From Botryllus schlosseri (taxonomy: Eukaryota): 64,000 bases of DNA. Positions within the stretch are counted from its first letter, which is position 1. The number at the start of each line of letters is the position of its first letter. The stretch covers positions 2,542,001-2,606,000 of the forward strand of contig CM119380.1 in the NCBI GenBank assembly GCA_051294905.1. Reading direction: 5' to 3'. Made by a program: the position numbers and the translations under genes. The notes beneath the pieces were generated by a model. It saw only the letters and a program-made list of their open reading frames with translations. It had not been told where the DNA came from and searched no databases. This document shows, one piece after another, positions 1 to 64,000 of this stretch.

Positions 1-459
1 TGACCACAACGAAATGATCACAGGTTACGTTGTAGTTGTAGTGGTAGTATTAGCAGTAGTAGTAGTAGAAGAAGAATACAATAGCAATTAACGTATCTAT
101 GTTTCTTGGACGGCTCACTGCTAACATTGCGCAGTGATCAGTGATCACCTTTACCAACCCTCTTGTATGATTCAAATCCATATCAATTTGTTTCAACGTC
201 TCGAGGCTTCGTATTCGATCCTAATGGCTGACATAATAACAGACTGTAGCATAGCTATACAGTAAGTCGCGTATATTATTTGCGGTTCTGCGTCTGCGTG
301 ATAGACGCCTTCTTGCATGCATATTCAACTTTATAAAGTATGTGTATGTATACATTAGTTATTTGATGCAAGATAAATGGCAAATTATACTGTCTTTCAC
401 TCAGCCAACAAAATGTAATTACTTTGAATCGTCACTGATACTTCGAAAATTCAATTTGA

Positions 460-651
460 CTTGAATTGTGACTTGACTCGTGACTCGACTTGACTTGACT
501 TGACTTGACTCGAGTCACATCCAAAAAACGAGTGACTTGACTTGACTCGAGTCACTTTCGAAAATCGCTTGACTTGACTTGACTCGAGTCAAAATGTGCA
601 ATGACTCGAGATGACTCGTGACTCGAAGGTACTGACTTGATCCCAACACTG
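460..651 (-). mobile_element. End of a hAT-like non-autonomous element with GACTT/GACTC subterminal repeats
   Basis: Dense GACTTGAC/GACTCGAG repeats end in TCCCAACACTG, the reverse complement of CAGTGTTGGGA. The same terminus occurs at 15893 (+) and near 16900-16912 and 17340-17354. No partner TSD found. Confidence 0.55.
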
Positions 652-2234
652 GTGGCCAGTCGAAAAATTAGGGGGTTTGGATTTTTTTCAAATTTACCAA
701 TATAGCATCAATTCAATTAGGGGTCAAGTACATGCGTAAATGGCTATCATATAATATCTTCGTATCGACGATTTTAGGCGTATGATAAGCTTGCCGGAGT
801 CAGGCAGTGCTGCCGATTAGCGAGTCACTGATCTCTGGTGAACAATTAAATACGCGCGAGTATACGCAGTCTCGGCTACAGTTTTTGCAAATCAAAATGT
901 CCGAACTTGATTGCACCGATTTCAAACCTTTGACGTATTTCAGAACTCGAGACATGATACACATCTTCTGGTCGTTACGTTCAAGTATTAGCGGGAATCA
1001 ATTTCGCACGTTAAAGTCTGTTTGCAGCAATTTGATTATATTCAGGTTCGCGGTGTCGCTTTTTAATCAATTAGACATGAAACGATAACTAAGTAGCGTA
1101 AACTCGGCCGCATTGTCTCGAAACCAGCGAGAGACAGGAACCAAAGCATGCTAGGCTCGAGACGCGATAGTTAGGCCATAGGCCAGCAATTATATCTTTT
1201 ACTCGAGGCCTATTGCAGATGCTATTGTGTAGGCCAGCGATGGCATCGTGCACACCAGGCCGAAGCCGCCAATGCAGATTCGATTGCGCAGTTAAGCGAT
1301 GATATGGTGTGAACTGTGCCCATTGCAGATGCGACTGTTGAAGCCTGCGGAACCAGGCTCGATCGAGACGCGATAAATCAGGCTAGCGACGATTGTCCCG
1401 CGCACGGGAATGAATGACCTAATTTCGCGACCATCTCAGCGGGAGATAATCGCAGATTCTTCGCGCTAATTGACAACACGTTTCTCGCAAACCCGCCGCG
1501 CGGAACACTGATTACACAATTATTGGATTGCAACTGTAGCAATTGCAAGAGTTAGAATGATCATTTCAAAATGACGGGGTTTCGCGTTTCAAGTAGGGAA
1601 GTTCGACCCCCGAAAACCCGTGGCTACGCGCCTGGCACACGCGCGTACCGAAATCGAAGACGTCTTTAACGAGGTCGCATCGATTCGCTTGATTACTAAT
1701 TACTGGTCACAAATCACTTGGGCGTTTGAGCATTTTGCACGAGGTGGCCGCCGCCGAGTGGAATCAGGAGTGTATGTTGTGAAATTGTGAAAAGCAGTGC
1801 GAGGTTTATCGAATTTTTCCGTGGTATTATGGTGTGTGGTAGTGAAGAGGTCATGTATGTCTTGGTAGTAGAGGGTAATTTATTTAGTTGATTTGCTGGA
1901 CAATTTTGGGTTCTTATATTTGAAATTCAATATGGTGTCGTGTTTTTCACGAATCAAATTCAAGTTTAGGGTTAAGTTTGTAATATAGAGTAAATGTGAT
2001 GGGTTGGAGATTTCGAAGGAGTTTTGTTGGTGGGCTGGGCTGTGGTAATGTCGGTATCGGAATAGGTAAGAAGCAGTGAAATGAAATTAATAAAAGTGGG
2101 TATGGATAGTTCCGAATAGCTTTTTGATAGTTTTCTTTTTAAAATTGAGAGTAGAAGACGAAATAGCTTTAGGTTGCGATCACTCTCGGTTGACGCTGGG
2201 GAAATTTCAGATACTGTCGTTATGAGCAAAACCT

Positions 2235-3278
2235 GTGAAATATGCTACAAAAGACTCAAAGATAAAAATTCTTCGGAATATGAGGAGTGGAAAAACTTTC
2301 ATAAGGAAAAGGGAAAGTGCTTGTGCATTGTGCAACCATGACAAACCAAGTTCAAGCATGGAGACCGCTGTAGCAAAATTATTTGGTCTCGCTCGGTTGC
2401 CAAGCACAAGATGCGATATACAAAAATATTGTGTGATGGGGACAACAAAACTTTACAGTCTTTGAATGACATGAAAGTTTACGATGTTTCGATTGAGAAA
2501 TCAGAATGTGTCAATCACATCCACAAACGAATGGGCACTGGCCTGAGAAATTTGCCACAGGAATGTCCTCATGTCAAAGGTGTGACTGGTGGATTGACTT
2601 CAGTCACGAAGAAGATGTCAAAGGTGTGACTGGTGGATTGACTTCAGTCACGAAGAAGAAGCTAAGTAGCTACTACCGCAACCATATAAGGAAGTACGCC
2701 ACAACTTCTAATGATCCTGACGATTTTGACGAAGCTGTAAGCAAAATGAAGACCCACTGGAGCAACACAAGTACCGTCTGAATGACAATGTTGACTGGTG
2801 CACCTATAAAAATAGGTTGAACGACCCACCACTGAACCAACAGGTAAAACAATGAAAACAGTTGCCACAGTCTTTTTTGCAACACCTCCTTCTCCTTTAT
2901 AACAGGTTGTCGGAAGAATCTCTATTGAAAAGATCTATCAGTGGACTTACCCAAAACCAGAATGAATCATTCAACGCGACCATATGGCAAAGATGTCCTA
3001 TGGCAAGATACTTCGGAACTGGGGCTGTAAAACTTGCCCTGGCTCTGTCAGTACTAAGCTGGAACGTTGGTTGCAGTGGGCTCTCGAGTGTAATTGAAAG
3101 CCCGGACTTAGTGCTTTTTGTGAAAGTGTTCACTGCTGTTTTTGAAGGACATGAAAAGACGAAACGCATCTCAACGCTCTTCTGCAGTAAAAAAAAGAAA
3201 ATTCGAAGAGCTCGAGAGTCCTTAGACTCTCATCTGACTATGTCCATGGCGGCTATTGATGCCGATATTTTGTTATAG
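2235..3278 (+). pseudogene. Decayed Mutator-like transposase (animal PF20700-type)
   Basis: Motifs LCDGDNKT..., IEKSECVNHIHKRMGTGLRNL and LLKRSISGLTQNQNESFNATIWQRCP...AVKLALALSVLSWN are spread over several frames. A 44-bp tandem duplication near 2571-2658 causes a frameshift. Confidence 0.75.
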
Positions 3279-3699
3279 ATGCTTCACTGTCTGATACCAA
3301 TAAACTAATATGATCATTTACGTCATTAGCACCGTTTATATCCTTGCTTTTCGGAGTTATTGTGGTTGTAATTTTTTAAATGCGTTTTTCTCAGAACTGA
3401 CGTTTTCTATCGACAAATTCTATCTCCTCCGCACCTGCTAATCCGATTCATTTGAAATTTGGTACGAATGATGTTTAGGGTATATATAATAAATCCCATG
3501 GAGCGTTTTTTCAAAATTTTCACCAAGCAGAAATGTTGCAAAAAAGCTAAACTCAGGGTTCGCAGCCAAAAATTTCATAACACGTTTTTTGAACATCCCT
3601 TCATGGGGTTGTGGATATATGTCTGTACTATTCCTCCACCAATTTTGAAAGGAATATCTCCAGAGCATTTTGACTTCTTAGGATTTTAGTGAACGGGTG

Positions 3700-4611
3700 G
3701 TGATAATTTACAGATCAATTCGAGTTCTTGTCCCCTTGAGCCCCGTGGTTCAAAATAAAGGCCATATTCGGAAAAGAAATTTATTGCCTTTTCCAACAAT
3801 ATATAGATCATGGAGCTAGCATCTACCTTGTGGGAGATATGACCACAAACGTGAACAACTGTGAAATTCATTTCTAACTAGTAGTGCCCCCTAAACAGTG
3901 GCCCATACCGACAAACTCTTCCCTACTGAAAGAGATGGAGGATACTCGATGCAACTGGGGTCATCTATGTTACTCACCGACGAAACTTCGCAAGATTTTT
4001 GTGTGCTGCGCTATTCTGCACAGCATCTGTCGCAGAAACAACGTGCTGCTGCTGAATTGCAACCCAGTCAATGAAACCGAAGATGGTCAAGATGAATCGT
4101 CTTGGGTGCATCTCCCACCGCAATCGTATTGCGTGACAGAATCGCCAATATGATGGGAAACGAGTAGTCGACCTCATTCGCAGCGTTCTATTGCTCACCA
4201 CTCATGTTTTTACCACTGCAAGTCAATGTTGTTGACGAATTGCGGTAGGCACAGTGAACCTACCCTTACCTAATATAATAAACTTGACATACAGAAATTG
4301 AATGTTTTACGTGTAATTGAATCGATCATAGATAGAATCAACTGTAACGTAATTCATGTTGACCGTGCCGAAAGAGCAACACGCTCACTAAAGATCTCCA
4401 AGAACTTTTGTTGATTCACCACAATTTGAGCAAGCAGATCACTAATATTACTCTGCATCTCCACCATTTCTTCAGTCTCTTCCTCTTGCGTCGATTCATC
4501 CCTGCGCTTCGTCATCCCTGCGCTTCGGGAGGCTGAATATTTCGCATTAACAAAGTCCGTTACACACTCGTTCAACGATGCACTGCTGCAGCCTTCCTCG
4601 CAAGATTGCAA
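3700..4611 (+). pseudogene. PIF/Harbinger relic: nuclease C-terminus (+) with a convergent ORF fragment (-)
   Basis: LCYSPTKLRKIFVCCAILHSIC matches the Harbinger L.Y.P.K...I..AC..LHN.C motif. The opposite-strand acidic/coiled ORF 4354-4611 fits the tail of the second (Myb/SANT-type) ORF by inference. Confidence 0.55.
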
Positions 4612-7399: not shown

Positions 7400-9597
7400 C
7401 AGTGTTGCCAATTTAGCGATTTTCGCGCTAGATCTAGCGATTTTTCATCCGGTTTAGCGCCAAAAAATATGGATCTAGCGCCTAGCGATAAATCTAGCGA
7501 TTTTTGAAAAAGAATTTAGCGATTATTTAGCGCTTTTTTTCCGAAAATAACCAATAAAGATCAGTTCTGGTCGACGACTGCATTGGCTATACCAGAGGTC
7601 TCAAACTCAAATGTGCTCGCGGGCCAATTTCCTATTTTTGATGGCGCCGCGGGCCGCACCACCAATAATAGGGGAATTCAATGTATTTCAAAGTAGGCCT
7701 TATTTCCGCGTTTCGAGCATAGGTCTACTCCTGATAACTAGGCTATATTGGCATGTCATTACGGAAGTCAAATGGAATCAGCGTTTGATTTTACCTTCGA
7801 ATGTTGGAACAGATGAATAACAACTTGAACATAATGAATCTGTGCAATAACAATAGAAATGTGCAATCGCCGAAGAATCCGTTGGTGTTACAGCTGTGAA
7901 GCGTAGGCTACGACTAGTTAATACTCGCCACATTAAATTGGCGACAATAACATATATAAAGATACCCAATATGACACGAGATGTAACCAACTATACATCA
8001 AAGGGCCAACATAATGCCAATGTCGGTTGCCATACCAACACAACATGCTTAGATATCTAAATAAGCTACGCAACGCAAGCTACGACCTTTTGATATTTTA
8101 CTATGTCTCCTACCAGTTTCATAGTTTGTTCATAGTGTCCTATATGGTGTGGACACAAGCAAATCTCACGGCTCAGTGAAATTGGTCTTTGTCACACTTT
8201 CCATTTGGTCAAAGGAAATTTGTCGGTAATTTTTGACCGGCTTGTCCTGCATTAGCCTACATTTGATAAAACGGGTATCAATGGAAAGCTACCACGGTAC
8301 CTCTTGGCTATACCATTCACCAGAGTGCGGACTCCGATGATATATAATTATAGATTACTAACCTACCTACAGATATATAGTAGATACGCAACTCCTATCG
8401 GTTACGCATGGGCAAACAGTGTCTCTTCTTGCTGAGTAATCTAAAAGTAGCATAATTGGCAGTGCTACATCTGGCGACCTGAGCGCTGAAATTCAATATA
8501 ATTGGCCACGATCGAAAGCCAGTGTCGCAGTGATTCCGAAAACAAAACACACAAAACAAAATCTCGCCAGGACAACGACACCATGCACCCCGAAACAGCC
8601 CCAAAGTCCGAAAACCGGCATTGCTCCAACAATGGCACCGCCGCAACACAATGAACATAATAATGACCAATTTCGTCCAGCGATTGTTCTGATCAATGCC
8701 GATTTCAGACCCCGAGGGCCGCCTCGAGGTCGTTCCACTGTCCTGACAAGAACCCAATTCGCATTGTCGGAATTAGTGCGACACCAGTTCCCGTCCACGA
8801 CCAGATTAATTAAATTTCATACCCCGGGTCGGTCCTCGGATTATTTTCTCAAGGCCTCTACTTATAGTGGCTGGCGAACCCGGTTCAAGTCGGGTCAAGT
8901 CGCATGTCGTGTTCAAGTACTCCAACACAGTTTAGAGAAGTCAAGCGCATTTCCACAGTTGATCGCATCACGTATTCATCGAGCAAGGCACGCACGCTTA
9001 TATATTGTGCGGTTATGCCTGCAAACCTGGTTAGTGGTCACGTGTAGCGATCATTGCGCAAAGTGATCTGCTTTATCGAAATGCATCGAACGTTTTGTCC
9101 CGCTTAGAGATGACTATTACGTATTATGAGCTAGAAATATGATAAGTGACTTTGGCCCCAGACGAGGAAAATATAGCTGAGAAGAATGTATCGATATTAT
9201 GTTTCAATTAACACCTTTAACTTCGAAAACTTCTGGTGCGGAGCTGGTAGCCGACATTTAGTTGACAATTTCACATTCTCACGTAGTTATCAAATCGGCC
9301 TTATTTCCTTCCGTAGAAGCTTTCCGAAGTTTTAGTTCATTTTATAGCGAGTTCACGGTCCCCGTAGAATATGTTGTAGCCATTTTTTCCATATAAAATA
9401 CCCTTACACAATCGAGAAAGTAACCTACGGGTTTCTGAATACGGCAACCGCATACGTAACAAAGGCAGGCGACACATAGTGGTTTGATAGACCCTAATTA
9501 ATGCAGATTTAGCGCTTTTCTATCAATATTTAGCGACATCTAGCGATTTTTGACACCGGTTTTAGCGATTTTCTTTCATCCGGAGTTGGCAACACGG
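7400..9597. mobile_element. Non-autonomous hAT element with nested insertions
   Basis: TIRs CAGTGTTGCCAA / TTGGCAACACGG. 8-bp TSD ATCACAAA at 7392-7399 and 9598-9605. TTTAGCG/CTAGCG subterminal repeats at both ends. Confidence 0.9.
8350..8790. mobile_element. Degenerate copy of the foldback family best seen at 51569-52549
   Basis: Shares the TATAGAT.ACTAACCTAC terminus and the GTCGCA.TGATTCCGAAAA / TCGGAAT.AGTGCGAC inverted motifs. Further partial copies lie near 5670-5700 and 46225-46318. Confidence 0.6.
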
Positions 9598-14999: not shown

Positions 15000-15380
15000 T
15001 GTACTGTCGATGTGACTCAAGTCGATCATGTATTTATATTCTTTATTCGTGATCTCATGGATGAATAAAATACTTCGAATCAAAAAATGTTCAACAAGTA
15101 GTTGATTTTGATGAGGAATATTTGAGACCTTTACTACAGATCTGACAAAATGGTGAACGCGAGACCATTTTTCTTCAAGGCCCACGGCTATGACTTCCAA
15201 GATGTCACAAATGGGTTCTGGACTTGGTGATCGAGCACAGCAAAAAATCCACAAGTGTATGGAAGAAGAGCTAACGACAGTGAGACGGAATAATGGATGT
15301 TTTTCGATCACCTCAGACGAATCAACTTCTACACGAAACAGGCGGCACATGAATTTAAACGCTTTAGGTCGCTGATTTAA
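15000..15380 (+). pseudogene. hAT transposase N-terminal catalytic fragment
   Basis: FSITSDESTSTRNRRHMNLN resembles the hAT FS+T.D.WTS....Y first-Asp motif. Confidence 0.55.
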
Positions 15381-21375: not shown

Positions 21376-21436
21376 ATCACCCCTTTCGTTGTTTTCGCCC
21401 CCTATTAATCAGCAATCGTGTAATCAGGGATTCACG

Positions 21437-31553: not shown

Positions 31554-31559
31554 AACACT

Positions 31560-42053: not shown

Positions 42054-42359
42054 GTCTAAGCTTTCGATATCGATATGTCCACACCGAATAGTCCATTCCT
42101 TGCAAACGGAGCCAGGTATGATATAAATCAGGCCCGCGATATTATTGACCTTTGAACTTCGAAAAATTATCGCACTTCGTGTGGCTAGTGGCCCGCGCAA
42201 TAGTTCGTCAATCAAATGTGGCCCTTTGGCTGAAAAGGTTGGCCACCCCTGATCTAGGACCTTGAAACTTGTGGACCATTTGCTCAGTACCGTGTCGCAC
42301 AGAAAATTCATGCCGCCGATAAAAACATCCACCTGTTGTTCGCAGAATATCAACACTCT

Positions 42360-47079: not shown

Positions 47080-47240
47080 GACGAGATAGCGTAATGGTGA
47101 AGCGTCCGGCTTCTTGATCGGTAGGTCGTGGGTTCGATCCCAGGCCGGGTCAGATCAAAGACCTGATTAGTAACACTGGTATCCATGACTTCCCTGCTTG
47201 GCGCTGATGCATTACTGAAATAGCATGGAGGGGTGGTGCC
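47080..47240 (+). mobile_element. tRNA-derived SINE head with a probable Nin-type core
   Basis: A-box TAGCGTAATGG and B-box GGTTCGATCC, followed by GGTCAGATCAAAGAC...TGGTATCC...CTTCCCTGCTTGGCGCTGATGCATTA, which resembles the Nin-SINE domain as I recall it. Confidence 0.6.
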
Positions 47241-48448: not shown

Positions 48449-49592
48449 TAGGGTTACCATATCTTTGAAAAGCAAATTCCGGACACTCTTTAGCGCACAC
48501 TAGCGGATTTTAAAATGAGGTGTAACATATTGTCTGGCAATATGACGTCACACTAGAAAAGCATTGCCCAATGCCCATCGACTGTATGCAGACACTATAC
48601 AGGAATGGAATGGAACATAGGTCATGAAATGAGCCATTTGTAATGTGAGCTCTGGAGATTGCTGCTTGCTAGGGTCTGCAATAGATTCCCCCACGGGCCG
48701 GATGAAATCGTATGACGTGCCGTATTTCGCCTGCCAGGATTGTGTTTGACAGCTCTGCTATACTGTTAGGTCGGTGCGGGTATCTGGTTATGTGTTTTAA
48801 TCAAGTCCGAAACATCATTTTTCTGCCCCCTTCCGCCCAAAAGAGCACTGATCTTGGGCCCACTATGGGTTAGTCGATGTAACTTGTTGTGCACTTATTA
48901 TATGCATTTGACTGTTAAATTTTATGAATGAATTCTGTTAATAATATTGATTCTGATTCTTCCGTATATTAGGGTACTATAAAATGTACCAGCATGTTTG
49001 CACATCCGGTGATTTCCAACCTTTCATGGTCGCGACCTCATTTCCAACTTGAAAATGTTCCGTGGCAAAGCTCAAAACTTGATAAGCTGATTACTAAAAA
49101 ACATTCAGCTTGTCCAAACTTATTCACGGCTTAGGAAGCTGATTATGTCCAACGTCATCGCGATCCCCAGATAAAGGCAAACGAACCCAAGATTTGGAAC
49201 CACTGTCTGTGACTGAAGCATCCAATCGGCCTTAGCGCAACTCTAGGAATATACCGTTAGCTTATAATTGCGATTACAACCAGACTTATTTCAGTAAATG
49301 ATGGTTATTTATATTTGTTTTGATTTCATTGTTGACGAGGGTGGTGCCTGGTGCCCATACTAATATCATTATACGTTGCATTAACTCGCACGCGGAGCGA
49401 AAAAGAGTTTTGAATAGCATAAATCTGCTTGAAAATAATACTGTTTATGCTGAATTACGAAAAACTTTTGAGCCTGTTTCAAGCCTTCAAAATTCCGGAC
49501 ATTTAGACATATTTTAGAAATTCCTCCCGGAAGCAGATTTTTCAGTGAAATTCCGGACATGTCCGGGGAATTCCGGACGTATGGCAACCCTA
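48449..49592. mobile_element. hAT MITE inserted in the 5' LTR
   Basis: TIRs TAGGGTTACCATA / TATGGCAACCCTA. TSD ACCTAGGA at 48441-48448 and 49593-49600. The 3' LTR shows the empty site (single ACCTAGGA at 54800-54807). Confidence 0.95.
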
Positions 49593-49939
49593 ACCTAGGA
49601 CCACACTACTGCTGCATGGTGCCTATGCGTGAGATTAGTTCCAGCTAACACTTCTTACGGAAGAAGCCGACGTTCGCTATCGTTCGACATCGCATCTAGG
49701 ACATTCTATACGGTGACCCGTTTATTTATATTTTCCAATTCTGAAGTACGCTTCACGACAGCAGAATCTCGGGTATCATATACGGCATTTCTTGAAGTGT
49801 ACCTTTTAGTGCATGTCACCTAAGAATCTTTTTATTATAAACGTGTTTCACCGCATTTCTCCATGGCGAGTAATGATGATACTAAGCCCGTTCCGGGCCC
49901 TAAGCCCTGACGTTGAGAGCTCAAAATATGTTAAGCTCG

Positions 49940-50198
49940 AGAAATCTTCACCCAGTGAGCTCGACGACATGGCTATCGTTATTATGCGTGCTAACCATGT
50001 CGTCGAGCTCACTGGGTGAAGATTTCTGCGAGACGATTATTCTGGTCTGCGAGACGCTGCACACGTATTTTATCATCTACGTCAGCTGGTGTAGAACTAA
50101 CTTCTACTTGGCTATCGTTATTATGCGTGCTAACCAAGTAGAAGTTATCAATAAAATACGTATACACTGTACAGCGTCTCGCAGACCAGAATAATCGT
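49940..50198 (+). repeat. Two stem-loops with an identical 22-nt loop
   Basis: 33-bp perfect stem at 49940-49972 / 49995-50027. Second stem 14 bp at 50098-50111 / 50134-50147 plus a 27-bp outer IR at 50033-50059 / 50172-50198. Both loops read CTATCGTTATTATGCGTGCTAA. Confidence 0.95.
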
Positions 50199-50210
50199 GG
50201 CGCAGCAATT

Positions 50211-51330
50211 TTGTTGAATCGGGCTGTAGGAGCTGAAGGTGGAACTGGTATTGGCTACCATCCGGACTCCAATCCCCACTCTGATCATAGACATTACGAG
50301 AACGAAGTAGATACCTTGCTGCATACGCCTCGCCTTACGCTTTTATCGGATCATCCTAATGTCAATACTTCTGGGCGCGCGCGGCCCCGATCAGAGCCAG
50401 TTGCCACGCCACAACCGGCACCAGTTGTGCCGACACCAATCAAAGCACATTCCGACAGCCATACCTCTGAAATGGGCACAACAGGGTATCGAGATTACAT
50501 AGACAGAGAGCGCCGAGAGCTGAGGGATGTTCTCAATAAAATGCCTCGTGTCAAATTCGATGTCCGTCACCCGTCACAGGTTTTTGCACTAGCTGATATG
50601 GCTTTTGAGACCAACGACATTCAATCCAATTACGCTAAGTCATCCCATCTGATGTTGACTATCGATCATGACATCGTCCAACGCATGTTTGCAACGGCCA
50701 TTGATACTAAGAAAATTGACAGTTATGATTCCGCAAAGCGGGCTTTATTGCGCAGATTTCAGACCCCAGTAAGCGCCCTGGCGTACAATTTTGGCGGAAT
50801 TTAAAAAATCGCAAAGTCAGTCGGCTTAACCCCTGAAAAAGCGTATAACACTGTCGTTCAATACCACGCTGGTTTTGTTGACTGTGACGCGACAAGACGC
50901 ACGATGAAATCGATGTTTGATACTCTTCTAGACGATCCCCTCAAGCCGTCAATGATCGTTCACGGAGCCGAAAAATCGCTGGACGACTTGCTAACCATTG
51001 CCCAACTCGTCGCTGCCAGAATAGCCGACAGACCGCAATACATCAATGCAGTACAGACGAACACCACGTATGAAACGAGGGAGTCCGACAGAACGCAGAC
51101 CGAGAGAACCGCTACTCTGGAGAGAATGCTCAAACAGCTGCAAAGCGACTTCAAACGGAATGGGATTTACAAGAAAGAGCCAGATGCTTCTAAAATCAGG
51201 CACAACCTCTGCTGGTTTCATAGAAAATATGGACATAAGGCACAGTAATGCGCCGCCCCGGACACATGCCAATCCGAGGCACACCATAAAGCTATGACAA
51301 CTTCAAATCAGAATCAAAATTTTTGATTGG
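50211..51330 (+). pseudogene. gag: Gypsy-type gag (DUF7041-like) in one frame with in-frame stops
   Basis: KFDVRHPSQVFALADMAF...YDSAKRALLRRF and C-terminal LCWFHRKYGHKAQ*CAAP match the CW+H.++G..A..C..PC gag knuckle. ORFs 50211 and 50904 are in the same frame, with stops at 50802 and 51246. Confidence 0.7.
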
Positions 51331-51568
51331 GGTGAAATCGGTCGATGACATTCCTGTGATAAACGAAGTCGATCTTCTTCACCCGCCATCATACACAGGC
51401 TCAAATTTCGTCGCGTACTACGCCGGCGATGGAATGTCTGATTTCTCGCACCCCGTGCTAAACACGCCTACGGCATCTGGTTCTTACGGTTCAAAGGAAC
51501 ATGTGGTTGACGTGTCCACACCTCACGCAGGTCGCGCTGGAAATTTTACCACCAACGCGATGCCTGAC

Positions 51569-52549
51569 TATAGATAACTAACCTACGGATAGATACCAGA
51601 GATTAGCGGATTTGAAATTTCTATGTCCTAATCCAATCCAAATCCGAACCTTCAAATCCTAATCCATAACTTTTTCATATTCAAGTTCATGTCCAATCCT
51701 AATCCGATTCCAACTGGAAATTCAGAAAAAATACTAATTTATGCAATGGAGGGATCCGAAAATTTTCTTTCACAACCAACGATTCACTTGATTCAAGATA
51801 ACTTAGTAACCATATAAGTACATTAATAGCTGATCTGAATACAGTCTGTCGCCATTCGCCACACATTTCAATCTCCCAGAAAATAGATAAATCCAATCCA
51901 AATCCGTTCTGAAAAAAATGTCTAATCCAAATCCGACAAAATTTCACAAATCCTGTTTTTTCAAAACCTAATCCTAATCCGTGCTCATCTCTGATAGATA
52001 CCCAACACCCGTCGTCACGCTTGCTTGCTCGGAGGAAATACTGCTCAGCAATCTGAACTTAACGTAATTGCCAATCCCATAGCTGACGACACGAGCGCTC
52101 AAATTAAATAAGGTTGATCTTATTAGAAAGCTACTGTTGCACTGATTCCGAAAATATACATTAAAATCCGATCGGGGCTATGGAACCAGACCGAAATAGC
52201 GTCCAAAATCTGAAAATCGGCATTGTTCCAGACAATCGCATCGACGCACCACAATGACCATAACAATGACCCTTGCGTGTCTTCGATTGTTCAGAACAAT
52301 GCCAATTTTCAGACTTTGAGGTGCATTTCGAGGCGATTCCATTGCCCCGATCGGATTTTAATGTATATTTTCGGAATCAGTGCGACAGTAGCGTTCAAAC
52401 AAGATCAACTTTATTCAATTTGAGCGCTCGAGTCGTCAGCTACGGGATTGGCAATTACGTTGCGTTCAGATGGCTGAGCGGTATTTTCCTCGGAGCAAGC
52501 AAGCGTGACGACGGGTGTTGGGCATCTATCCGTAGGTTAGTTATCTATA
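51569..52549. mobile_element. Foldback (almost fully palindromic) DNA element, ~576 bp without its insert
   Basis: Termini TATAGATAACTAACCTACGGATAGA / TCTATCCGTAGGTTAGTTATCTATA. Imperfect arms of ~250 bp. Flanked by GCCTGAC at 51562-51568 and 52550-52556, which is a 5-bp CCTGA TSD if the termini are CTATAG. Confidence 0.88.
51597..51993. mobile_element. hAT MITE nested in the foldback element
   Basis: TIRs CAGAGATTAGC / GCTCATCTCTG. TSD ATAGATAC at 51589-51596 and 51994-52001. AATCC-rich subterminal repeats. Confidence 0.92.
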
Positions 52550-55500
52550 GCCTGACTCGCATTAGATTGCTGAGAACTCAGTTCCAGGCAATTTTGCATC
52601 AGAAAATCCTGTGGATTCCTATGAGGCGGATTTAAAACACTGTTGACGAAGCTAATGTAGCGACTTCTCCTTCCAGAAACTCCGTAATTACGCCAGTCAT
52701 AACGAGAGCAGGTCGCAGTGTTCGCAAACCGAAGCCATTTGACCAGCACGGATCTTTTGCAATCAATGCTCTATTTTCTCCTCCTGAGGGTGGATATAGA
52801 CACCCCTAGTGAAGGGAGGCAATTTTATTACTTCGATTGAGGTTAACGTGTGTCCAACCTCCGACTCGTTCCAGACCTCCCGTCAGATCAATGCGTAATT
52901 AGGATTTATATGTCTTACTGCTCAACAATTAGATATGGCAAGGCACATTTGCCTTCGCGCCATTTTAACACGTGCAAAAACAAAATATTTTTTTTTTATT
53001 ATACAACGACTTGGACGCGGGTACTATCACTGAGACCATAAAGTTAGCGTTCTTACCATGTTGTCGAACACCACACCAAACCTTACTTCTATACCTTCTT
53101 TGACAGGCTTACTTATTATTATTGCTATGCCATGGGGGCTATTTAAGTGTTTATATTTCTCTATTAGTTTGTTTTTCTCCATTAGTTTGTTGATCGTTCT
53201 AGGCTGTTTTTAGTTTATATGTCCTTTTACCCGTGATGCTGTCGTGAGCTATTTCAGACCAACCGGTCCGTCCAAATGTTCATGCACACTGCAACACCCG
53301 ATATACTACTCCACATTCGCGGATATCGATTTCGTCGGGCAACGATTCGGGTGACGATGCTGAGCGACCTTATTCTACTGTGTGACCTCGCGCTAAATCG
53401 ACAAGATGCCAGCGACTGAGTGCTCCGATCTACGCCGCCTGATGCATATTCCGCATCCAGCCGAAAGTCCGGTCCGGAACGCTCTATCTCAGACGATGAC
53501 CGCCACGATCGCATCTGCTCCGCTGACACACGTATTGTTCAGCTGGAAGTCTATACGCGCGTAGCCATGAGGTCTCAAGAACACACAATTTCGTTACTTG
53601 ACGGCCGACGACGACACCAGCTCACGACGAATATACCAATTCCGCTTCCGCGAATGAGTAGCACATCGCGTTTCCGTTGCAATTACCGACCGAGGTATTA
53701 TGACACATGCAACTGGTCACACCTGTATTACATGGTGACCTTTACTTTCTAGTTGTCTAGCCCCCTCGCCGCGCGACGATCTTTGATCGACTGACTCTTG
53801 CGCCGCGTCGGTGTAGTTATAATTATGTAGTTATAATTATTATTTTGTGTTTTGGTTTATAGGCTAGCGGTGTTTATTATAAAAGAAAAAACTTACTCTG
53901 ACATGATCAAATATTATCCTCTGTATTTGGCCTCGTTCCTTAATTACGTTATGAACATTACTGTTGTATAATCGTCTGTTGTTGACTTATATACCAATTC
54001 ACATTAACCTGCCTTACCCTTTCATTGTTACCCTTTCATTGAAACCAAGTGAAATTCCTTTTCCGTTGAGGGGATAATGTAGTGACTCTGTCAACGTGAA
54101 TTGGACTTCAGAGTATTATTAGGACTATCATGTGTGGCCAACTTACATTGTATCGTATACATCTTGTAACTAGTCAAAGCCATAATCGTTTTGTGTATTG
54201 CGCAAGTTTTGGAAAGATATATCTGCCTTTTTCGTACCGCGACTATTTCGCGATCCGTATTCCTATCGGCTAAAATTCACAAACTGTGTTACGTAAAACT
54301 AAAGATACATCTGCCTTTTTCGTACCGCGACTATTTTGTGATTCGTATTCCTATTGGCTAAACTTCACCATCTCTGTTACGTAAAACCAAGTTCTACATA
54401 GATATCTCTGCCTTTTCCATGCCGCGACTATTTCGTGATCAGTATTCCTGTTGGCTAAATACTTCATGACGTTTTCCGCAATTCGTTTCCTCATTGGCTT
54501 TTTCCATGCCGCGACTATTTCGTGATCAGTATTCCTGTTGGCTAAATACTTCATGACGTTTTCCGCAATTCGTTTCCTCATTGGCTAAAAGTTACAACGA
54601 TTGTTTCGAAAAGTTACAACGATTGTTTCGTACTACTGTAGTATAAACCCGATCCCTTGAACTCGATCGCTTGATCTCGTGATGCAGACTCATTTAACCG
54701 CTACTAGGACGAACATATTTTCTTGTCGTTTCCACGCAAATACATTCGTGTCAGAGAACTTTGCTGTGAATTGAAGAGCTTGCAACAGTACACAGGACAA
54801 CCTAGGACCACACTACTGCTGCAATAGACAAACAACACGGCAAACCACTAGAGGCTAAAAAAATAGCAGATCTGCAAGGGCGTTTCGACACCAAGCCTTG
54901 CGAAGCGCAATCGAGACAAGCGCTGATTGAGGAATTCGGATATACCGGAGTCTCAGAATTATGGATATAACTCATGGGATTATTTTGACTAACATCACAT
55001 ATTTTCATAGACGTTTTTTGTATCTGGACCATGCCATTTTTTTATCTTGACCATACTAAGTCGTTTCATCAAGTTGAGAAATTCAATCTACTTGTTAATA
55101 CTGAACACTGTATTAAATCAAAATACAGTGAAATAAATATATTTAGGGTAAATAGATTCATCGTAATTTTAGTTTTTTTATGGATATTATCTACATTGAT
55201 AAACACTAAACATAATGTTCATTGTGCGAAAGCACACTTTTTAGGCTTTTTTCACAAACGAACATCATGAATCAGGTCATTCGACATGATTGGTCTTCAT
55301 AGTCAATTATCTATTTAACTGATGTTCGTTATCAGCGACCATCAAAACCCCTGGAACGACTCCTAGATGTTCTGTAAGCTAAACCTGATGCGGCCTCGAA
55401 TCGGGAAATTTTTTTTTTTAGCTGCGGCTACTTCGTTGAGGAACGCACTGTATAAAGAAATTGCATCTTAAACAAAATTCCAACTATCGCCATTGCACGA

Positions 55501-56659
55501 TAGTTGCACTAATAAATTTTAAAGGTCAAGGTCCGCATCTCTGCGGCACGATTTCTTAATGTACTTGTTCGCACAGTTTCTCGACGCGACCTCCGTTCGC
55601 ACAGTTTCTCGACGCGACCTCCATTTATTCTAGCGACATAATTTCTTCCCAAGAGTTTAATAAATTCTACTTCAATGAATGTAGTTTGGAAATAAAAACT
55701 TTATTCACGCAACTTGAGTGCAATGTGGATAGTCAGCTGCCGTTCCATAACAGTGGATGTCTGAAGAAGATGGCTGCAGCAGATTTTTGTCTTGATTTCA
55801 TCTTAAATTCGAGACCACATCATATGAAGTGCCCCTTCAACTTCAACCTTGGAATTGATTTCCTACAAGCATGTTGCTATTTTTGCGCTGAAGAGATATT
55901 TCCATGGCTAAACCAAGTATCATCGTAACTCTTCTATAATTGTGCAGAGGAAGCAATCTTTAATTCTGCAAAGGAAGGTTTTTGCAAAGTCAACTCATCC
56001 ACCCTCCTGATGACGAACTTAGCGTCGACGAGCATCAAAAGTAAATAAGAGTAGAGTGGGAAAAGAGGGTGCCAGATAAAGAGATACTGCGAGATAGAAT
56101 GAGAAGAACTTTTAAATCACGCCGTGACAGTGTCGTAAATGCAATATAAAGCGTATATATATATATAAGCAGTGAATTACATTGTTAATGAATGCTTCTC
56201 TGGGGATGTGTTGATATTAGATAATGAGAAAAGTATGGTAAATTAACAAAATGAAAATATATCTTCATTTTCCCTCATAATTCGAAATAATGTTGAAATA
56301 CATTTTGAATTCTCTTTAATCCAGGTTTTTATATTAAGACATTAAAAGGTATTTCGGATACTACGATGCTTATTGTCTTGATACAATACTACAACAACAA
56401 TAATAATAATACTCAATTCAGATTCAAGTGCTCGAATCATTATGCCCAGCCCTAAAACCATGTGAGTTTAGTGTGCGCCATTGCCTCGCGGGAAAACCAG
56501 TCGAAAACCACTGATATAGATTTGTAAGTTGTAGCTATATAAGTGACGTCATTGGTTTCTTGAGCACGTTGAATAATAATTTCGAATTTTACAAAACGCT
56601 TGGCATCGATATGTTTAAAGGTAACGCGAGCATCCGAATATAGAGAGTAAACTGATGTT

Positions 56660-57010
56660 TCGGGATTGCTACGATATCACTCTCCTCCATATGGCCAATG
56701 CCGACCTTCACGAAACGATTCTGAACAATTTGATAGGTTGATCACAGATAACGACACGACACGTTATGTCATGGATGAAACGAAAATACGCAGTCTTCCC
56801 TACGGTGACAACGCTAAAACCGTCAAGAATGTAGTAGGTTATGACGCCAACGCCTTATACCTTGCATGTATCAATCAAAAACTGTCAACGTGATATGCTA
56901 TAAGGTGGATTTATGATCAGGAAAAGCGTTTGGCCTACTTTTGCGGAGCTCGAATGACTGGAATACGAAAGTCGCGATCGTGATATCAAAATTCATCACA
57001 CTAATCAATC
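56660..57010 (+). pseudogene. Polinton/Maverick-type protein-primed DNA polymerase B fragment
   Basis: ETKIRSLPYGDNAKTVKNVVGYDANALYLACI carries the polB region II D.N.LY motif. Downstream E*LEYESRDRDIKIHHTN matches the (E)WL.Y......I.H..N motif with TGG changed to TGA. Confidence 0.7.
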
Positions 57011-57499: not shown

Positions 57500-58340
57500 A
57501 ATGGCGGCCACGGCAATGAACGCGCACGCGTACGACTCGCGAGGCAATCCACGTAGGTATTCTTGCCTACGCATACGACCTAGCCTTGCTTGCCCCGAAC
57601 ACCGCATCAAACAGCGCCTCATTACCCAGCTAAAGGCCGCCGCCGCTCTTGTTGGCATCCAGATCAACGCCACGAAGACTGAGGTTCTGGCCATACAAGC
57701 TCTACTGGAGAACGCGACACCAATTCAACTGGGAGAAATCGATCTCAAGTATGTAACGAGTTTTGTATACCTTGGTATTGACGTCGCTGACTCTGGAAAA
57801 GCGCTCAAGGCGAGGCGAGCAAAGGCCTGGGGCGCGGCAAGACGGCTACATAGCCTCTTCCATTCAAGTGCCTCAACCCAGCTCAAGACCCGTATCTTCC
57901 CTGCACCTGTATCTTCCGTACCACTGTCGAGCAGGTTCTTCTCTACGGAATAGTGGCCCTCACGCTGACAGAGAAGCTGGCTAAGACTCTCAACACTAAC
58001 TACGACGCACTCCTCCACTATGCACTCGGCATTCACCAGCCGAAGCATATATCCACGAATGCATTGCGAGAACTCACAGGAACGGTCCCGTGCCGTGTAC
58101 TGGCAGCTGAACGACGCTTCCGCCTAATCAGTCATCTAGTGCGGCATCAAGACGAGCAATCGGCCGCCGCCATCATCAATCACATTCCCACGGAGTCATG
58201 GCGCAGAGGTGGCTGGAATCGGAAAACATGGCGCTAGACGATAAAGACTGATCTAGCGCAACGCGGGCTGTCGCTTGAAGACGCCCACAACCGCCTACGT
58301 TGGAGACGCATAACACGAGCCCAAAACTGATTATCTCGGT
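57500..58340 (+). mobile_element. 5'-truncated LINE (RTE-like) RT C-terminus
   Basis: GILAYAYDLALLA (decayed YADD), VGIQINATKTEVL, VTSFVYLG, RRAKAWGA..RL...F, RRFRLISHLVRH, W...IKTDL...GL. T-rich tail after the stop. Confidence 0.85.
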
Positions 58341-58759: not shown

Positions 58760-59170
58760 TGATATACAGTAATTCAATAGTTACCATTGGACTCGGCTCT
58801 TGGATGGTGACGCAACAATGCCGTCTGTCGGTATTATTGCTAATTTGGCGGCGTGAAGGACTGACGTGCGTTGTTAAGTCTTGAAAGATGGATATTTGCG
58901 TTGTATGTGATATCGAAGTGGGACCATTGTACGTACAACCAGGTAAGTCTAAAAGTGCTATGCAATTGCATGTAATCAAATTTATATATTTTATTTGCAG
59001 CAAGATGATATCGTTGAATCATATGCAGAGCGTATGGACACACTCGAAGGATTGGAAGCCACATAGTTGGAGTGCTTATCAAAAAGACAATCCGCACCAA
59101 CAATGACGTCAAGGGGTGGCACACTCGCCTAAACATGCGGGGACGGCGCAACATGCCATAATATGGCCTT
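58760..59170 (+). pseudogene. MULE transposase C-terminal fragment
   Basis: VWTHSKDWKPHSWSAY then, after a frameshift, IRTNNDVKGWHTRLN, matching the MULE RTNN..EGWH..+N motif. Confidence 0.7.
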
Positions 59171-59605: not shown

Positions 59606-61710
59606 GGGTAGTCTAACTGCGTCCGGGAGGAAATTCTAAAATATGCCTAAATGTCCGGAATATTGAAGGCTTTGAAGTAGGGTCAAGATTTTTTCGTAAA
59701 TAAAACCATAACAGCTGTTGATTTCATGTCAAGATTGTCAAGTATTGCACTTCCATTTTAAAAACTGTCATCTACCTGATGGTTAGTAAGTACGTGGGAA
59801 GGTGATGTTCAACATTTCAATGAATTGGCAGGAGCTCATACTTCACCTGTTCTGAATCAGCCACAAAGAAGATGGATGTAAAGTACAAGAGGCTCGACTT
59901 CTGAAGGATATGCTATATGATCACCACGCATACGATGCTCGGTATTGCCATCGTTTATTTCAGTCAGACAAAAAAAGAAAGTGACCTATTGAAATTTTAT
60001 AGAGCTCGAGTCTTGTGATGCGGATGGCATAATTAATGCCATGAAAGCTGAACTTAATGCGGCGAAAGCTGAACTATGAGAATGGAACCTCAATCAAAAA
60101 CATCGTGTTGCTATCGGGACTAGTAATGCAAGTGTAGTGGTCGGAGTGAACAATGGTGTGTACCAAAGGTTGAGGAATGATGCCCCATCATAAAATTCTA
60201 GAGAAAATTGTTTGTCATTCCCTACAACTGGTGGTGTCCCAGTCCTCAGCTGACTCATTGCCAAGAAATTAGGAAGTTCTGTTGTCAGAGACCTACAAAT
60301 GGTTCGCACATTCATCGCAAAGGCAGCTTGCTTATAATCGTCTCTACGAAACAATCAACGATGGCCCAACACCACTGAAGATATTGAATAATTGCAAAAC
60401 AAGATGGCTGTCGATTGAACCGGCTGTCCGACGAATCATTGATCAATGGGTGGAACTAAAAACCCACTTTGGAATAGTCAGATGGCCAGAAAAATTTTCC
60501 ACTGCTGAGATATTGGCCGATATGTACACGTACAGTGACGAAAGGAACCTGGCATACCTTCTCTTCTCTTCTTACATCCCATCTTTTCAGAAGTGCAGCG
60601 TGTCAACATCTTAACAAGTCTTGTGAAGGAAAGGTTGTCGACAAACTGAAGCTTTTTGAAGACTTATCAATGCTTTTTCAGTGTCTGATTAAAAAGCTGA
60701 TTGTACCCACAGCACGTATTGATGTCTTCAACGAGAACATCGAAGAATATCTCGACGCACGCCCATATTTGACGCATGGATTTGAGCACAAGGTGACACT
60801 TGGCGGATGAGAAGAATGGACGGCAGAAGAAAAGTGTCTGATAGCGGTCGCAACAGTTCCTAGTCAGTTCGTAGATGACTCAACAGGGCATTTCAGAACA
60901 TAAGGATGACGCATGGAGGTCTATCAAGAGCCAATGTGGACGGAGTTGGGTCGAATAAAGAGTGTGAAGTGCTCGGTCGTTGCACTTCCTCGACCGTCAA
61001 GAGGTTCACTGGTAGAGGTTTTGCAAAGGAATATGCCGTTAAGATAATTCCTTTTCGTGAAGCGCCGACGAATGAATCTCAGCGAAAATCCACTGAAGAA
61101 AGTGTACTGGAAACACTCAGTCACCGAAACTTTGTAAAATTTTACGCACGTATTCCGGATTCGAGAAGAGTTATTCCGGTGTTTGCAGCTATTACGGCAA
61201 CTCAAACAGCGACTACCGCAGAATTTAGAGATGCTTGAAAACATCTCGTTATTATCAATACTGCATCCCAATAAACCGCCGATTGCACCTATAATGCATT
61301 TGCTGTGAATGTCTAAATAGTTAGCGTTACACAGATGACACCGAAAGATTTTGGTCCGAGGTACTGGATTGCCAAGGTTCGTCGGGGTCTAATCCATTTC
61401 AAGAAATAGCAGAATTTGCAACCAGCACCTTGGTGCTGCCGCACTCGAATGCCGATATCGAGAGAGTGTTCAGCAGCATGAATCGAGAGAGTGTTCAGCA
61501 GCATGAATGAAGTCAAGTCGTAATAACGCGGAACTTGAAATGCTCTCGTTAATATTGACGATAAAGTTTGGTCCGAGTACACATGAAAAATGTTGTATAA
61601 GCTGCCCCATGCCCTCAAAAGTTGTTGAGTGGATTGTTACCATGGCCACGTACTGGACTAGGTCCAGCCCAGGAGATGAGCCTGCATGCTCTTCCATCGC
61701 ATATTCATAC
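59606..61710 (+). pseudogene. ZNF862-like hAT transposase relic
   Basis: Degenerate TAGGG terminus at ~59606. GTSNASVVVGVNNGVYQRL, ETYKWFAHSSQRQLAY, CKTRWLSIEPAVRRIIDQWVELKTHF, and a C-terminal PHSNADIERVFSSMN motif near 61440. Confidence 0.8.
60950..61160 (+). pseudogene. Protein kinase N-lobe fragment embedded in the hAT relic
   Basis: EVLGRCTSSTVKR (Gly loop), KEYAVKII (catalytic Lys), EESVLETLSHRNFVKFY (helix C and H.N+V). No HRD or DFG motif follows. Confidence 0.65.
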
Positions 61711-61897
61711 TTTACCCGGATTCTATATGAATAGTTCCAGATATCTGTAAATTGCATGATTGCATTTTCGAAAATTCTTTCCATTGGCGTGGGTAAGATA
61801 ATTGTACCACCTAAAAATACACATTGAACGCTCTCTTTCGAAATTTCATGCAGGTGATGTCATATTTTGTGATACGATTGTTGATACACCATGTTCT

Positions 61898-62833
61898 TGT
61901 TATGTTCTTGATCTTGTTTGAACTTAACTCAATGCGACGAGGTTGCAATAAGAAATCAGTATATAATCAGCAGTATAACTTTATAACTTTAAGACAGGCG
62001 ACACGATCCAGAGTGCAGTTAAATAAAAGACCACGAGACAACAGAACACAGGGAATAAATACGAAGCACGACACACGAGGAAATAATGATTGGCGGTAAT
62101 TACTAATCCTAGATAAATAAGAAACAAACGATACCAACGTAAAATGCACGAACATAACAGTCCTCCCCTGTAAGTTAAGAGTACAAGGTGATCTACGTTG
62201 GCCGATAGAAATCAGTTTGTTTTCTAATTCTAAGCGGATAACGTCTGCCCGACGATCGAGCAGGACTAGCTGCAGGGCGTTGTGCCCTATTCCTGACCAA
62301 TGGTTGCTCAGCTTGGGACTGTTGAGGCTGAGCAACTTCCTGTGTGGCTGTATCATTACTTGTGGAAATCAAGCGTGGTTGGAGTTGGTTTTTATGCCTT
62401 CTCCAATACCCATGATCTGTTTTTATAATGTACACAACACGCCCCAGTATTTCCGTCACCACGCCAGCAACCAACCTTGGTCCGCTTCGGTAACTGCGAG
62501 CGTAAACCGAGCAACCAATCTCGAAATGAGTGACTGATTGTCCAGGCGTAACGGGTTTCGATTTGTCGAAGGGCAGGCACAAACTTAACAAATTGCGCTG
62601 CTGTCGAGCATGTAAGATCTCGGCAGGCGTTTTCCAGTCTATGCCCGGGTGCGGTGCACATCGGTACGAGAAGTGTTTGGAGCGCGAAGTTGAGATCTTC
62701 TCCCCCGTCGCAATTTTTTATCAATCCAGCTTTCAAAGTCTGGCCGAAACGCTCCGCTTCCCCGTTAGAGGCAGGGTGAAAAGACGGTGATACGATATGG
62801 CTGATTGCCAAATTAGAACAAAACGTATCGAAT
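61898..62833 (-). mobile_element. Truncated Mag-like Gypsy copy (LTR 61898-62159 plus integrase C-terminus)
   Basis: Reverse complement of the LTR and pol end of 29925-34771, with a frameshift. Cut at ~62833, just before a CAGTGCTTTTCAACC hAT terminus at 62838. Confidence 0.93.
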
Positions 62834-62837
62834 GGAC

Positions 62838-63005
62838 CAGTGCTTTTCAACCTGTGTGACGGTTCGCACTTGTGCGAATGAAAAAATTTGCAGTGCGAAT
62901 GACGAACATGGTGCGAACGGTGCGAATGAAAATCCCGGATGAGTGCGAATGACGAAGGTGGTGCGAACGGTGCGAATGAAAATCCTGGATGAGTGCGAAT
63001 GAAAA
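62838..63005 (+). mobile_element. hAT-type left end with GTGCGAA(T/C) tandem repeats
   Basis: CAGTGCTTTTCAACCT terminus, then ~50-bp repeated units built from GTGCGAATGA and GTGCGAACG. Confidence 0.55.
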
Positions 63006-64000
63006 TCGTGAATAATAATTGCTTTTCAAATAAACATAATACGAAATTCAAGGGCAGTGTAACTTTAGTTGTTGCGACGCAACTGTAAAAACTTGTTTAA
63101 CTTACGACGCACCACTAGTCGTAGCTCTCACAAGCCGTATAGTGAATTGATGTTTTCGCACTATAATTATTACGTAACCAAAAGTTTGGTTTGGAAGCTG
63201 GTGTAGTGACAGACATATAGCAGCCCGTCTGAGGCTGGGAAGATGACGTTAAATTCACTTTCTGCTTACTTTCGCTAAACAATCATCAATACTTCCGTAA
63301 TACCTGTTCGATTAGTGCTAGGCACGAGAACAGTAGTAAATATACTATCATTACAGACTGCCATTTGCAAGTTGCAGTAACGTAAATTTTACCCTTTCAG
63401 GGGTTATTGAAGTATAGACCGCAAAGGGTATAATTTTGGGTCGACACAGTGCCAGGACTATCTATGTGTTCGGCGTAGCCAGCCGATAAAATGGGTGGGT
63501 GGTTGAAAGAAAAGAGCGGGTTCGATTTTTACCGAATTTAGTAATATGCAGGGCCGTAAAAGCACTTCGTCAGCCCCCCCCCCCCAAAAAAAAACGTTGG
63601 TCCTCGGCCCCCATATGGTGATAAACCGAACTTCAGTGAGCCAGCGCTAAGCGCGAAAATTTTCGATAATTCATGATAAAATCGGTCAATAAGATCGGGA
63701 ATTGCATATATATTGCTATCAATGTCTTGTCCTCTCTGCTCACGTAATGAGTTTTACCGGTAGAGCTGAGTGAGATGTCTTTGAAACTGTACAGTCCGTA
63801 AATAATGATTGAACATCTTCGGGCGGGCGGACTCGTTGGTATGACTTCGTTACATGATGTTATTTCGTGACCTCCTGTCTGCTATATCAAAAATATAGAA
63901 TCACTCAAACGTACTAGACTGAAAGATCACACGGTTTCGGATTGGTATTTCTTCACTGGCATATAATTTTTTCTTACAGGATGATATTTGTCTTGTATGT

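Follow-up and report, generated by a model that had tools for sequence, protein, structure and literature searches.

Mobile-element relics in the window

The window, which is the whole 64-kb stretch of DNA analysed here, holds relics from at least eight superfamilies of mobile elements, among them a full-length Ty3/Gypsy-type LTR retrotransposon on the + strand (29925-34772). The gag (30180-31550) and pol (31554-34478) frames of this element are both open, its two LTRs (258 nt each, 99% identical) end in TG..CA, the 5-bp target-site duplication (TSD) is kept, a primer-binding-site-like (PBS) TGG run follows the 5' LTR, and a purine tract precedes the 3' LTR. In Pfam, pol gave RVT_1 (E = 2.9e-26), RT_RNaseH (2.5e-33), Integrase_H2C2 (1.4e-15) and rve (3.3e-9); paired LTRs, TSD, PBS, purine tract, gag and a pol in the order RT-RNase H-integrase together identify the element as Ty3/Gypsy. 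Two 5'-truncated fragments of the same type, each with a pol end and an LTR, were found: one on the + strand (20488-21376; 92.6% DNA identity to 33887-34772, direct), whose ORF is a 94% match to the pol C-terminus, and one on the - strand (61894-63096; 90% DNA identity to 33839-34775, inverted), whose pol end carries one frameshift and whose - ORFs match the pol C-terminus. The preliminary description had listed these copies as Mag elements, and repeat alignment upholds them as Gypsy-type LTR copies oriented +, + and -, the last being the fragment at 62 kb.

All four supported DNA-transposon relics, namely one Mutator-like, one THAP-bearing and two hAT relics, lie on the + strand. The Mutator-like transposase relic (2120-3275), described as such before, runs through several broken frames; one + piece matches positions 232-291 of the 357 in the Pfam Mutator profile (PF20700; E = 5.8e-12), and the adjoining + pieces, none with a Pfam match of its own, resemble its continuation on reading. 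The relic at 24401-26973, previously termed P/THAP, is bounded by TIRs of about 94 nt that are 89% identical, and its best Pfam match was THAP (PF05485), as predicted, at an E of 0.011, which is under the curated cut-off; a 199-aa - ORF within this interval is antisense to the THAP frame and has no relatives. The hAT-like relic at 37834-38808 matched Dimer_Tnp_hAT, predicted beforehand, at E = 4.3e-4, which falls 0.9 bit short of the curated cut-off; a weak match of P-element HTH-like type lies at its start (Tnp_P_element, E = 0.0038), and a hAT-type motif is readable between both matches.

The other hAT transposase relic (59905-61731) is 5'-truncated and consists of nine colinear pieces with at least eight breaks. 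It has 508 relatives at E <= 1e-3, the named ones being ZNF862-like and FAM200B-like, and all nine long relatives that were scanned carry Dimer_Tnp_hAT, eight of them also DUF4371. A profile made from 29 relatives aligned colinearly on + over its positions 148-625 of 638, with no other match on + or -, and by this alignment the relic is assigned to the hAT transposons, whose transposase has a C-terminal dimerisation domain. A kinase-like + ORF (60879-61235; Pkinase, E = 4.9e-6) lies within it, the match occupying an interval of about 0.3 kb, flanked by two hAT pieces, over which the profile advances only 19 positions; the ORF, earlier listed as a kinase relic, is real, but because it is inside the hAT relic it is not counted as an independent one. 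Five hAT relics had been proposed, of which two are supported and two were not found, with one or two more at the level of motif leads.

Three further + elements retain their strand but only part of their earlier labels. The integrase-like relic at 27159-27557, then called BEL, had the rve_3 integrase core as its best match, as predicted (E = 0.025, under the cut-off); it had no counterpart in PDB and did not match the intact Gypsy-type pol in pairwise comparison, and its BEL/Pao assignment comes from reading only. The element at 47924-54807, then called gag-only, is LTR-bounded, lacks pol and contains a nested 0.5-kb hairpin repeat: its direct terminal repeats (47924-48448 and 54072-54807) are 77-90% identical, with 87-88-nt tandem repeats, and a purine tract lies on + directly before the 3' repeat. 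The internal + frame of this element (about 370 codons, one stop) has no protein relatives, and the gag identity is therefore not supported. The relic at 57501-58327, then called RTE, is a 5'-truncated, LINE-like ORF2 C-terminus with one frameshift and one stop, whose three + pieces are colinear with the relative P0001 (217 aa, E = 2.5e-27, 74% identity); P0001 is open throughout and has no Pfam or PDB match, and the reverse-transcriptase or RTE identity was assigned by reading only. The tRNA-derived SINE (47060-47250, 3' limit approximate) stands on + as described, with A-box-like and B-box-like promoter elements readable on that strand at about 47080-47140; since neither ARAGORN nor Rfam calls a tRNA there, its head is taken to be degenerate and tRNA-like.

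Reading also gave unconfirmed leads on +: a Harbinger/PIF-like motif resemblance at 3878-4150 (no Pfam family at E <= 10), a hAT-like stretch at 15157-15372 (no relevant Pfam match; E = 4.9, not significant, with the local hAT profile), a family-B DNA-polymerase-like stretch with one polymerase-type motif at 56651-56890 (no relevant match in Pfam, PDB or viral contigs) and a MULE-like stretch at 58885-59158 (no Pfam match). The Harbinger, polB and MULE relics of the preliminary description thus keep a motif-level resemblance on + but gain no database support, and its DUF4806-like frame and capsid-like relic were not found, nor were its two Ulp1-PHD copies by Pfam or ORF reading. A 2.3-kb direct repeat (16985-19265 and 43138-45497, 95% identical) has no Pfam match, and none of its frames encodes a protein that could be recognised; if it is the pair meant by the Ulp1-PHD copies, that identity is not supported.

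Strand distribution of the relics

Reading by eye took in all translated ORFs of 40 aa or more from the two strands. Stop-to-stop ORFs of 50 aa or longer, 227 from + and 255 from -, were all scanned against Pfam (E <= 0.01, six batches); for pieces found on reading, family predictions were written down before Pfam testing. In the scan, TE families matched + ORFs only (Gypsy-type pol, Mutator at 5.8e-12 and Tnp_P_element at 0.0038), and the - ORFs gave weak non-TE matches with no TE domain among them. Read as carefully as the + strand, the - strand yielded no TE relic beyond the Gypsy-type fragment at 62 kb, in agreement with the earlier statement that it bears no other TE domains. Outside the Gypsy-type copies, all ten - ORFs of at least 120 aa are antisense to + ORFs (six of them relics or leads, four without a family assignment), and the longest - ORF has no relatives among 5.8 billion proteins. 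The earlier claim that no host gene is present likewise holds for ORFs of at least 50 aa, in which Pfam recognised no host protein domain across the 64 kb except the kinase-like fragment and noise-level matches, a search that short exons could escape.

Among independent tool-supported relics, ten lie on + and one on - in the 64-kb window (two-sided binomial p of about 0.012), a value that may be unremarkable if many windows were scanned. The + relics are the Mutator-like relic, the THAP-bearing relic with TIRs, the integrase-like relic, the intact Ty3/Gypsy-type element and its fragment, the two hAT relics, the SINE, the LTR-bounded element without pol and the LINE-like relic; the Gypsy-type fragment at 62 kb is the sole - relic. 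Three of the ten + relics have a weak Pfam basis (THAP, integrase core and P-element HTH, E of 0.004-0.025), strong evidence alone gives 7:1 for + (p of about 0.07), and addition of five unconfirmed motif-level leads, all on +, brings the tally to 15:1. The large majority of TE copies share one orientation, although the numbers are small; the claimed bias of 21 relics in 22 is borne out in its direction but not in its count, and the secure relics make up about half of those listed before. Repeat-family pairs, an annotation-free test of orientation, show no significant excess of direct over inverted (7 versus 3), AATAAA signals are about as frequent on one strand as on the other (48 versus 46), and ORFs of at least 120 aa show a mild + excess (22 on + and 16 on -, versus about 8 expected per strand).

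Possible origins of the co-orientation

Uni-strand piRNA clusters are characterized by one long antisense precursor and by phased, 1U-biased small RNAs of 24-32 nt from that strand only. The layout of the window fits such a cluster of the flamenco type, read from right to left, and we consider this reading, the likeliest of those weighed here, to have slightly less than an even chance of being correct. Tens of kilobases of fragmentary TEs without recognisable host genes or domains, drawn from many unrelated superfamilies, are co-oriented, and a young intact LTR element has inserted recently in the same orientation; the window is a TE graveyard in which nearly all retained insertions point one way. 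The piRNA-cluster proposal of the preliminary description is in part supported by these sequence-level features, but only about half of the relics that it invoked are secure, and the poly(A) signals, being symmetric, are uninformative on a precursor; right-to-left transcription of the locus is plausible but unproven. The traits that would define a cluster, here a long - precursor and one-strand, 1U-biased small RNAs of 24-32 nt, are not of a kind that sequence alone would reveal.

What follows on transcription and its direction, on processing into piRNAs and on selection is inferred from this arrangement. One long - strand transcript would start from a promoter lying right of the window; being antisense to the + relics, it would be cut into primary piRNAs, and these would silence active relatives elsewhere. 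Selection would retain insertions that yield antisense RNA, the most recent of those captured being the intact Gypsy-type copy, which is young.

We regard it as unlikely that the window instead lies in a very long intron or non-coding unit of a - strand gene, from which sense insertions were purged with no role for small RNAs. Sense insertions bring poly(A) and splice signals, and an antisense excess of intronic TEs through selection against sense copies is well documented (PMC3088655, PMC1794541); an exon-like domain need not fall within 64 kb of a long intron, and a weak BUD31-like Pfam match (E = 1.6e-4) falls on the - strand somewhere from 32 to 64 kb. However, a functional exon of a protein as conserved as this one would match far more strongly, and the - strand of the window showed no host exon that could be recognised. 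Both cases would share a TE excess antisense to a transcription unit, but the bias on record is of moderate size and has been described chiefly for LTR elements and LINEs (PMC3088655). In the window, where flanking exons cannot be seen, the bias is near-complete and extends to the SINE and all four DNA-transposon relics, the sole exception being an LTR-element fragment. Because the DNA-transposon relics are also co-oriented, intronic bias explains the window less well. Chance, by which about eleven independent insertions in ordinary TE-rich intergenic DNA were aligned at random, is improbable to us as well: the 7:1 ratio of the strong evidence, the repeat pairs and the symmetric poly(A) signals speak for it, and among thousands of such windows per genome some reach 10:1, but each added tier of evidence agrees, from 10:1 with the weaker matches to 15:1 with the leads, and nothing emerged from the - strand when it was read with equal care. 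Least credible by far is an ascertainment artefact, with - relics hidden in families beyond recognition by Pfam on ORFs or by reading: Pfam on ORF pieces is insensitive, false negatives being common since it missed most hAT and LINE-like pieces, and long ORF clusters on either strand (about 8.4-9.1, 13.8-15.0 and 47.2-47.8 kb) have no assignment, but the same methods gave TE matches on + only, the hAT profile search took in both strands, and even the longest - ORF is without relatives.

Comparison with known clusters and implications

The flamenco locus of Drosophila melanogaster is a uni-strand somatic piRNA cluster, a long gene-free array of nested TE fragments, almost all in one orientation, with one transcript antisense to them and recent captures of active LTR elements in that orientation. 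Gypsy-class LTR elements dominate in flamenco, and the promoters of flamenco and of the Aedes cluster lie at one end, with a Cubitus interruptus site. The window resembles flamenco as a long stretch without a recognisable host gene, with co-oriented TE fragments and a recent LTR insertion, but it is mixed: 3 of its 11 relics are Gypsy-type, and the rest, with at least four DNA transposons, are mostly the Mutator-like, THAP, two hAT, SINE and LINE-like relics. In Aedes aegypti, the 143-kb flamenco-like cluster 38 is a repeat-rich intergenic region that contains TE-EVE hybrids on one coding strand and LTR copies with capsid and RT/integrase genes, and its one long transcript, which is antisense, yields phased piRNAs (PMC7161354). 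The window is likewise rich in repeats with same-strand elements; in cluster 38, however, viral relics fused to TEs define the locus and the RNAs were measured, whereas the window is known from its DNA, and no viral relic, capsid-like or polB, was confirmed in it.

We tentatively suggest, with less confidence than for a uni-strand cluster as such, that the window is a flamenco-like one-strand archive that keeps DNA transposons, a SINE and a LINE-like relic co-oriented with LTR elements; if so, TEs of every class within a single precursor would be subject to orientation-dependent selection. Should small RNAs prove absent, strong co-orientation can come from introns or chance, and calls of piRNA clusters from sequence would need a genome-wide baseline. 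If small RNAs confirm the cluster, the locus would map the mobile elements that this genome has learned to silence and would add a further case to the repeated origin of one-strand piRNA traps among animals; with DNA transposons included, the orientation selection of such traps would not be limited to retrovirus-like elements.

Strand-symmetric census of reading frames

The preliminary description held that 21 of 22 relics of transposable elements (TEs) and viruses are encoded on the plus strand, and because it conceded that this strand might be easier to read, every step of our analysis was made strand-symmetric. The window has a G+C content of ~42% and is free of N runs. Open reading frames (ORFs), defined from stop to stop on both strands, were nearly equal in number between the strands, with 148 plus and 167 minus ORFs of at least 60 aa, 32 and 29 of at least 100 aa, 22 and 16 of at least 120 aa, and 5 and 1 of at least 200 aa. 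Under a local second-order Markov simulation, each strand is expected to have ~8 ORFs of 120 aa or longer; therefore, long ORFs are above chance on both strands, and the plus-strand excess is modest.

The 227 plus-strand and 255 minus-strand ORFs that reach 50 aa were then scanned singly with Pfam (E<=0.01; six batches). Matches to TE families were confined to plus-strand ORFs and comprised LTR-element pol (RVT_1, RNase H, Integrase_H2C2 and rve), Mutator (5.8e-12) and Tnp_P_element (0.0038). The minus strand yielded weak, non-TE matches, namely BUD31 (1.6e-4), a spectrin repeat (3.3e-4) and others at ~0.005-0.01, a number near the chance level, since about two or three spurious matches per strand are to be expected with this cut-off. 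Models for Harbinger, BEL, Ulp1, PHD, polB and non-LTR reverse transcriptase matched none of these ORFs on either strand. Rfam and tRNA scans made no calls, and an all-versus-all comparison of ORF pieces recovered the DNA-level repeats and nothing further. The BUD31-like match lies on a minus-strand ORF of at least 60 aa within 32001-64000, which was absent among ten minus-strand ORFs scanned singly with Pfam. A match this weak does not fit a functional exon and may mark a decayed processed pseudogene.

Outside the Gypsy-type copies, all ten minus-strand ORFs of at least 120 aa overlap plus-strand ORFs, of which six are relics or leads and four are unassigned, and a protein search with the longest minus-strand ORF (199 aa) returned no relatives. 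Long minus-strand ORFs were therefore rejected as hidden genes, since each is antisense to a plus-strand ORF and six of the partners are plus-strand relics or leads.

Relics, repeats and their orientation

Pfam proved insensitive on ORF pieces, as those adjoining the Mutator match scored nothing, and for this reason the ORFs of both strands were printed and read down to a length of 40 aa. Family predictions were recorded before testing; the readings were based on motif resemblance and hence provide leads rather than tests. THAP was the best Pfam match of the piece predicted as such (E 0.011), the integrase core model rve_3 was that of the piece predicted to be integrase-like (E 0.025), and Dimer_Tnp_hAT matched a predicted hAT C-terminus (4.3e-4). 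Three plus-strand relics rest on Pfam matches at E 0.004-0.025 and were accepted because their family had been predicted beforehand. The THAP-bearing element (24401-26973) is flanked by 94-nt terminal inverted repeats, and a weak P-element HTH match lies alongside the 38-kb hAT relic (37834-38808). Pairwise BLASTP of the integrase-like relic against the intact pol, and of the two hAT relics against each other, gave nothing significant, and eight ORFs or relatives used as sequence queries against the PDB returned nothing relevant.

For the hAT relic predicted near 60 kb, 508 relatives were found at E<=1e-3, among them named ZNF862-like and FAM200B-like members; the hAT dimerisation domain was found in all nine long relatives scanned and DUF4371 in eight of them. 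Alignment with a profile of 29 long relatives covered positions 148-625 of 638, colinearly on the plus strand (59905-61731), with no second location on either strand of the window. Between two pieces of this relic, a kinase-like ORF (60879-61235, plus strand; Pkinase 4.9e-6, below the Pfam cut-off, N-lobe-like) occupies ~0.3 kb in which the hAT profile gains only 19 positions. The kinase of the preliminary description is thus supported as an ORF, which may derive from a piece of a gene that was captured or inserted, and owing to its position it was not counted separately. The predicted LINE-like relic (57501-58327) has a single relative, the 217-aa protein P0001 (74% identity), which is open throughout and colinear with three plus-strand pieces of the relic; this colinearity fixes the coding strand as plus, not the family. 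P0001 matched nothing in Pfam or the PDB, and its AlphaFold model has a mean pLDDT of 39.

The LTR element at 29925-34772, on the plus strand, is of Ty3/Gypsy type, young and apparently intact: its two 258-nt LTRs share 99% identity, both gag and pol are open, and a 5-bp target-site duplication, a run resembling a primer-binding site and a purine tract are present. Two 5'-truncated fragments of its family, each comprising the end of pol plus an LTR, lie at 20488-21376 on the plus strand (fragment A) and at 61894-63096 on the minus strand (fragment B). Their inner ends (20488 and 62833) correspond to starts ~50 bp apart in the pol of the full copy (33887 and 33839), as might result from a truncated variant common to both or from a preferred site of breakage. 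An element without pol is flanked by a second LTR-like pair (47924-48448 and 54072-54807); a purine tract ahead of its 3' repeat and a frame of ~370 codons interrupted by a single stop both indicate the plus strand, and its 220-aa plus-strand ORF had no relatives in a protein search. Within both LTR-like repeats, an 87-88-nt tandem unit forms variable arrays. Nested in the same element is an inverted repeat spanning 0.54 kb (51993-52530; arms 84% complementary), with related short copies at 8430-8542 and 46219-46318, which looks foldback or MITE-like. A tRNA-like SINE head near 47.1 kb bears A-box-like and B-box-like elements on the plus strand.

The sole two-copy unit is a 2.3-kb repeat (16985-19265 and 43138-45497) with no recognisable protein in any frame. 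A repeat of ~100-130 bp occurs in three direct copies of the same orientation, 80-90% identical (28856-29008, 42352-42482 and 61803-61908). In addition, ~18 units of 11-182 bp, each in two perfect tandem copies, are spread window-wide through otherwise decayed sequence (for example, 2571-2659, 25818-25887, 35237-35303, 42948-43317, 44539-44587, 54413-54586, 55567-55622 and 61457-61508), and one of these duplications is carried by one 2.3-kb copy but not by the other. Their pattern suggests a recent, ongoing short-tandem-duplication process.

Strand tally

Ten independent insertions lie on the plus strand, namely the Mutator-like, THAP-bearing, integrase-like, full Gypsy-type, Gypsy-type fragment A, 38-kb hAT, SINE, LTR-bounded, LINE-like and 60-kb hAT relics, and one, Gypsy-type fragment B, lies on the minus strand. 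This 10:1 ratio for all tool-supported relics has a two-sided binomial p of about 0.012; strong evidence only, leaving out THAP, the integrase-like relic and the LTR-bounded element, gives 7:1 (p about 0.07), and adding five unconfirmed leads gives 15:1 (p about 5e-4). An annotation-free check on the orientation of repeat-family pairs (7 direct versus 3 inverted) agrees in direction and is not significant. Thus, the direction and near-exclusivity of the reported bias stand, whereas the total of 22 relics, like several of the family names, does not: scanning and reading the ORFs of both strands recovered neither the DUF4806-like frame nor the capsid-like relic, two of five hAT relics were not found, and nor were the Ulp1-PHD copies, the only two-copy unit being the 2.3-kb repeat. 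Harbinger (3.9 kb), hAT at 15.2 kb, polB (56.7 kb) and MULE (59 kb) are motif-level plus-strand leads whose predictions no tool supported, and the polB-like lead had no relative in a viral-contig scan.

Interpretation of the co-orientation

Three readings of the bias were weighed, and poly(A) signals, being strand-symmetric (48 versus 46), favour none of them. A uni-strand piRNA cluster read on the minus strand would fit the mixed fragments, the near-complete co-orientation, the fresh LTR insertion in the same orientation and the lack of a recognisable host gene, although short host exons could escape detection. The window may instead be a long intron of a minus-strand gene: antisense bias of intronic TEs is real, but it has been reported chiefly for LTR elements and LINEs (PMC3088655), whereas here the plus strand also carries the SINE and all four supported DNA-transposon relics, and the sole exception is an LTR fragment. 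Chance also keeps enough weight not to be dismissed, with 8 to 11 events and an undefined number of windows scanned.

In a rough likelihood comparison, co-orientation was set at 0.85 for clusters, about 0.6 for introns and 0.5 otherwise, with priors of ~0.07, 0.33 and 0.60, respectively, for a TE-dense window without a recognisable gene. Under these rates and priors, which are our own rough estimates and come from neither a tool nor a paper, the cluster model receives between about 0.37, if the 7:1 ratio is used, and 0.67, if 10:1 is used. On the sequence evidence, we tentatively propose, at a little under even odds, that this part of the B. schlosseri genome may be a uni-strand piRNA cluster read on the minus strand.
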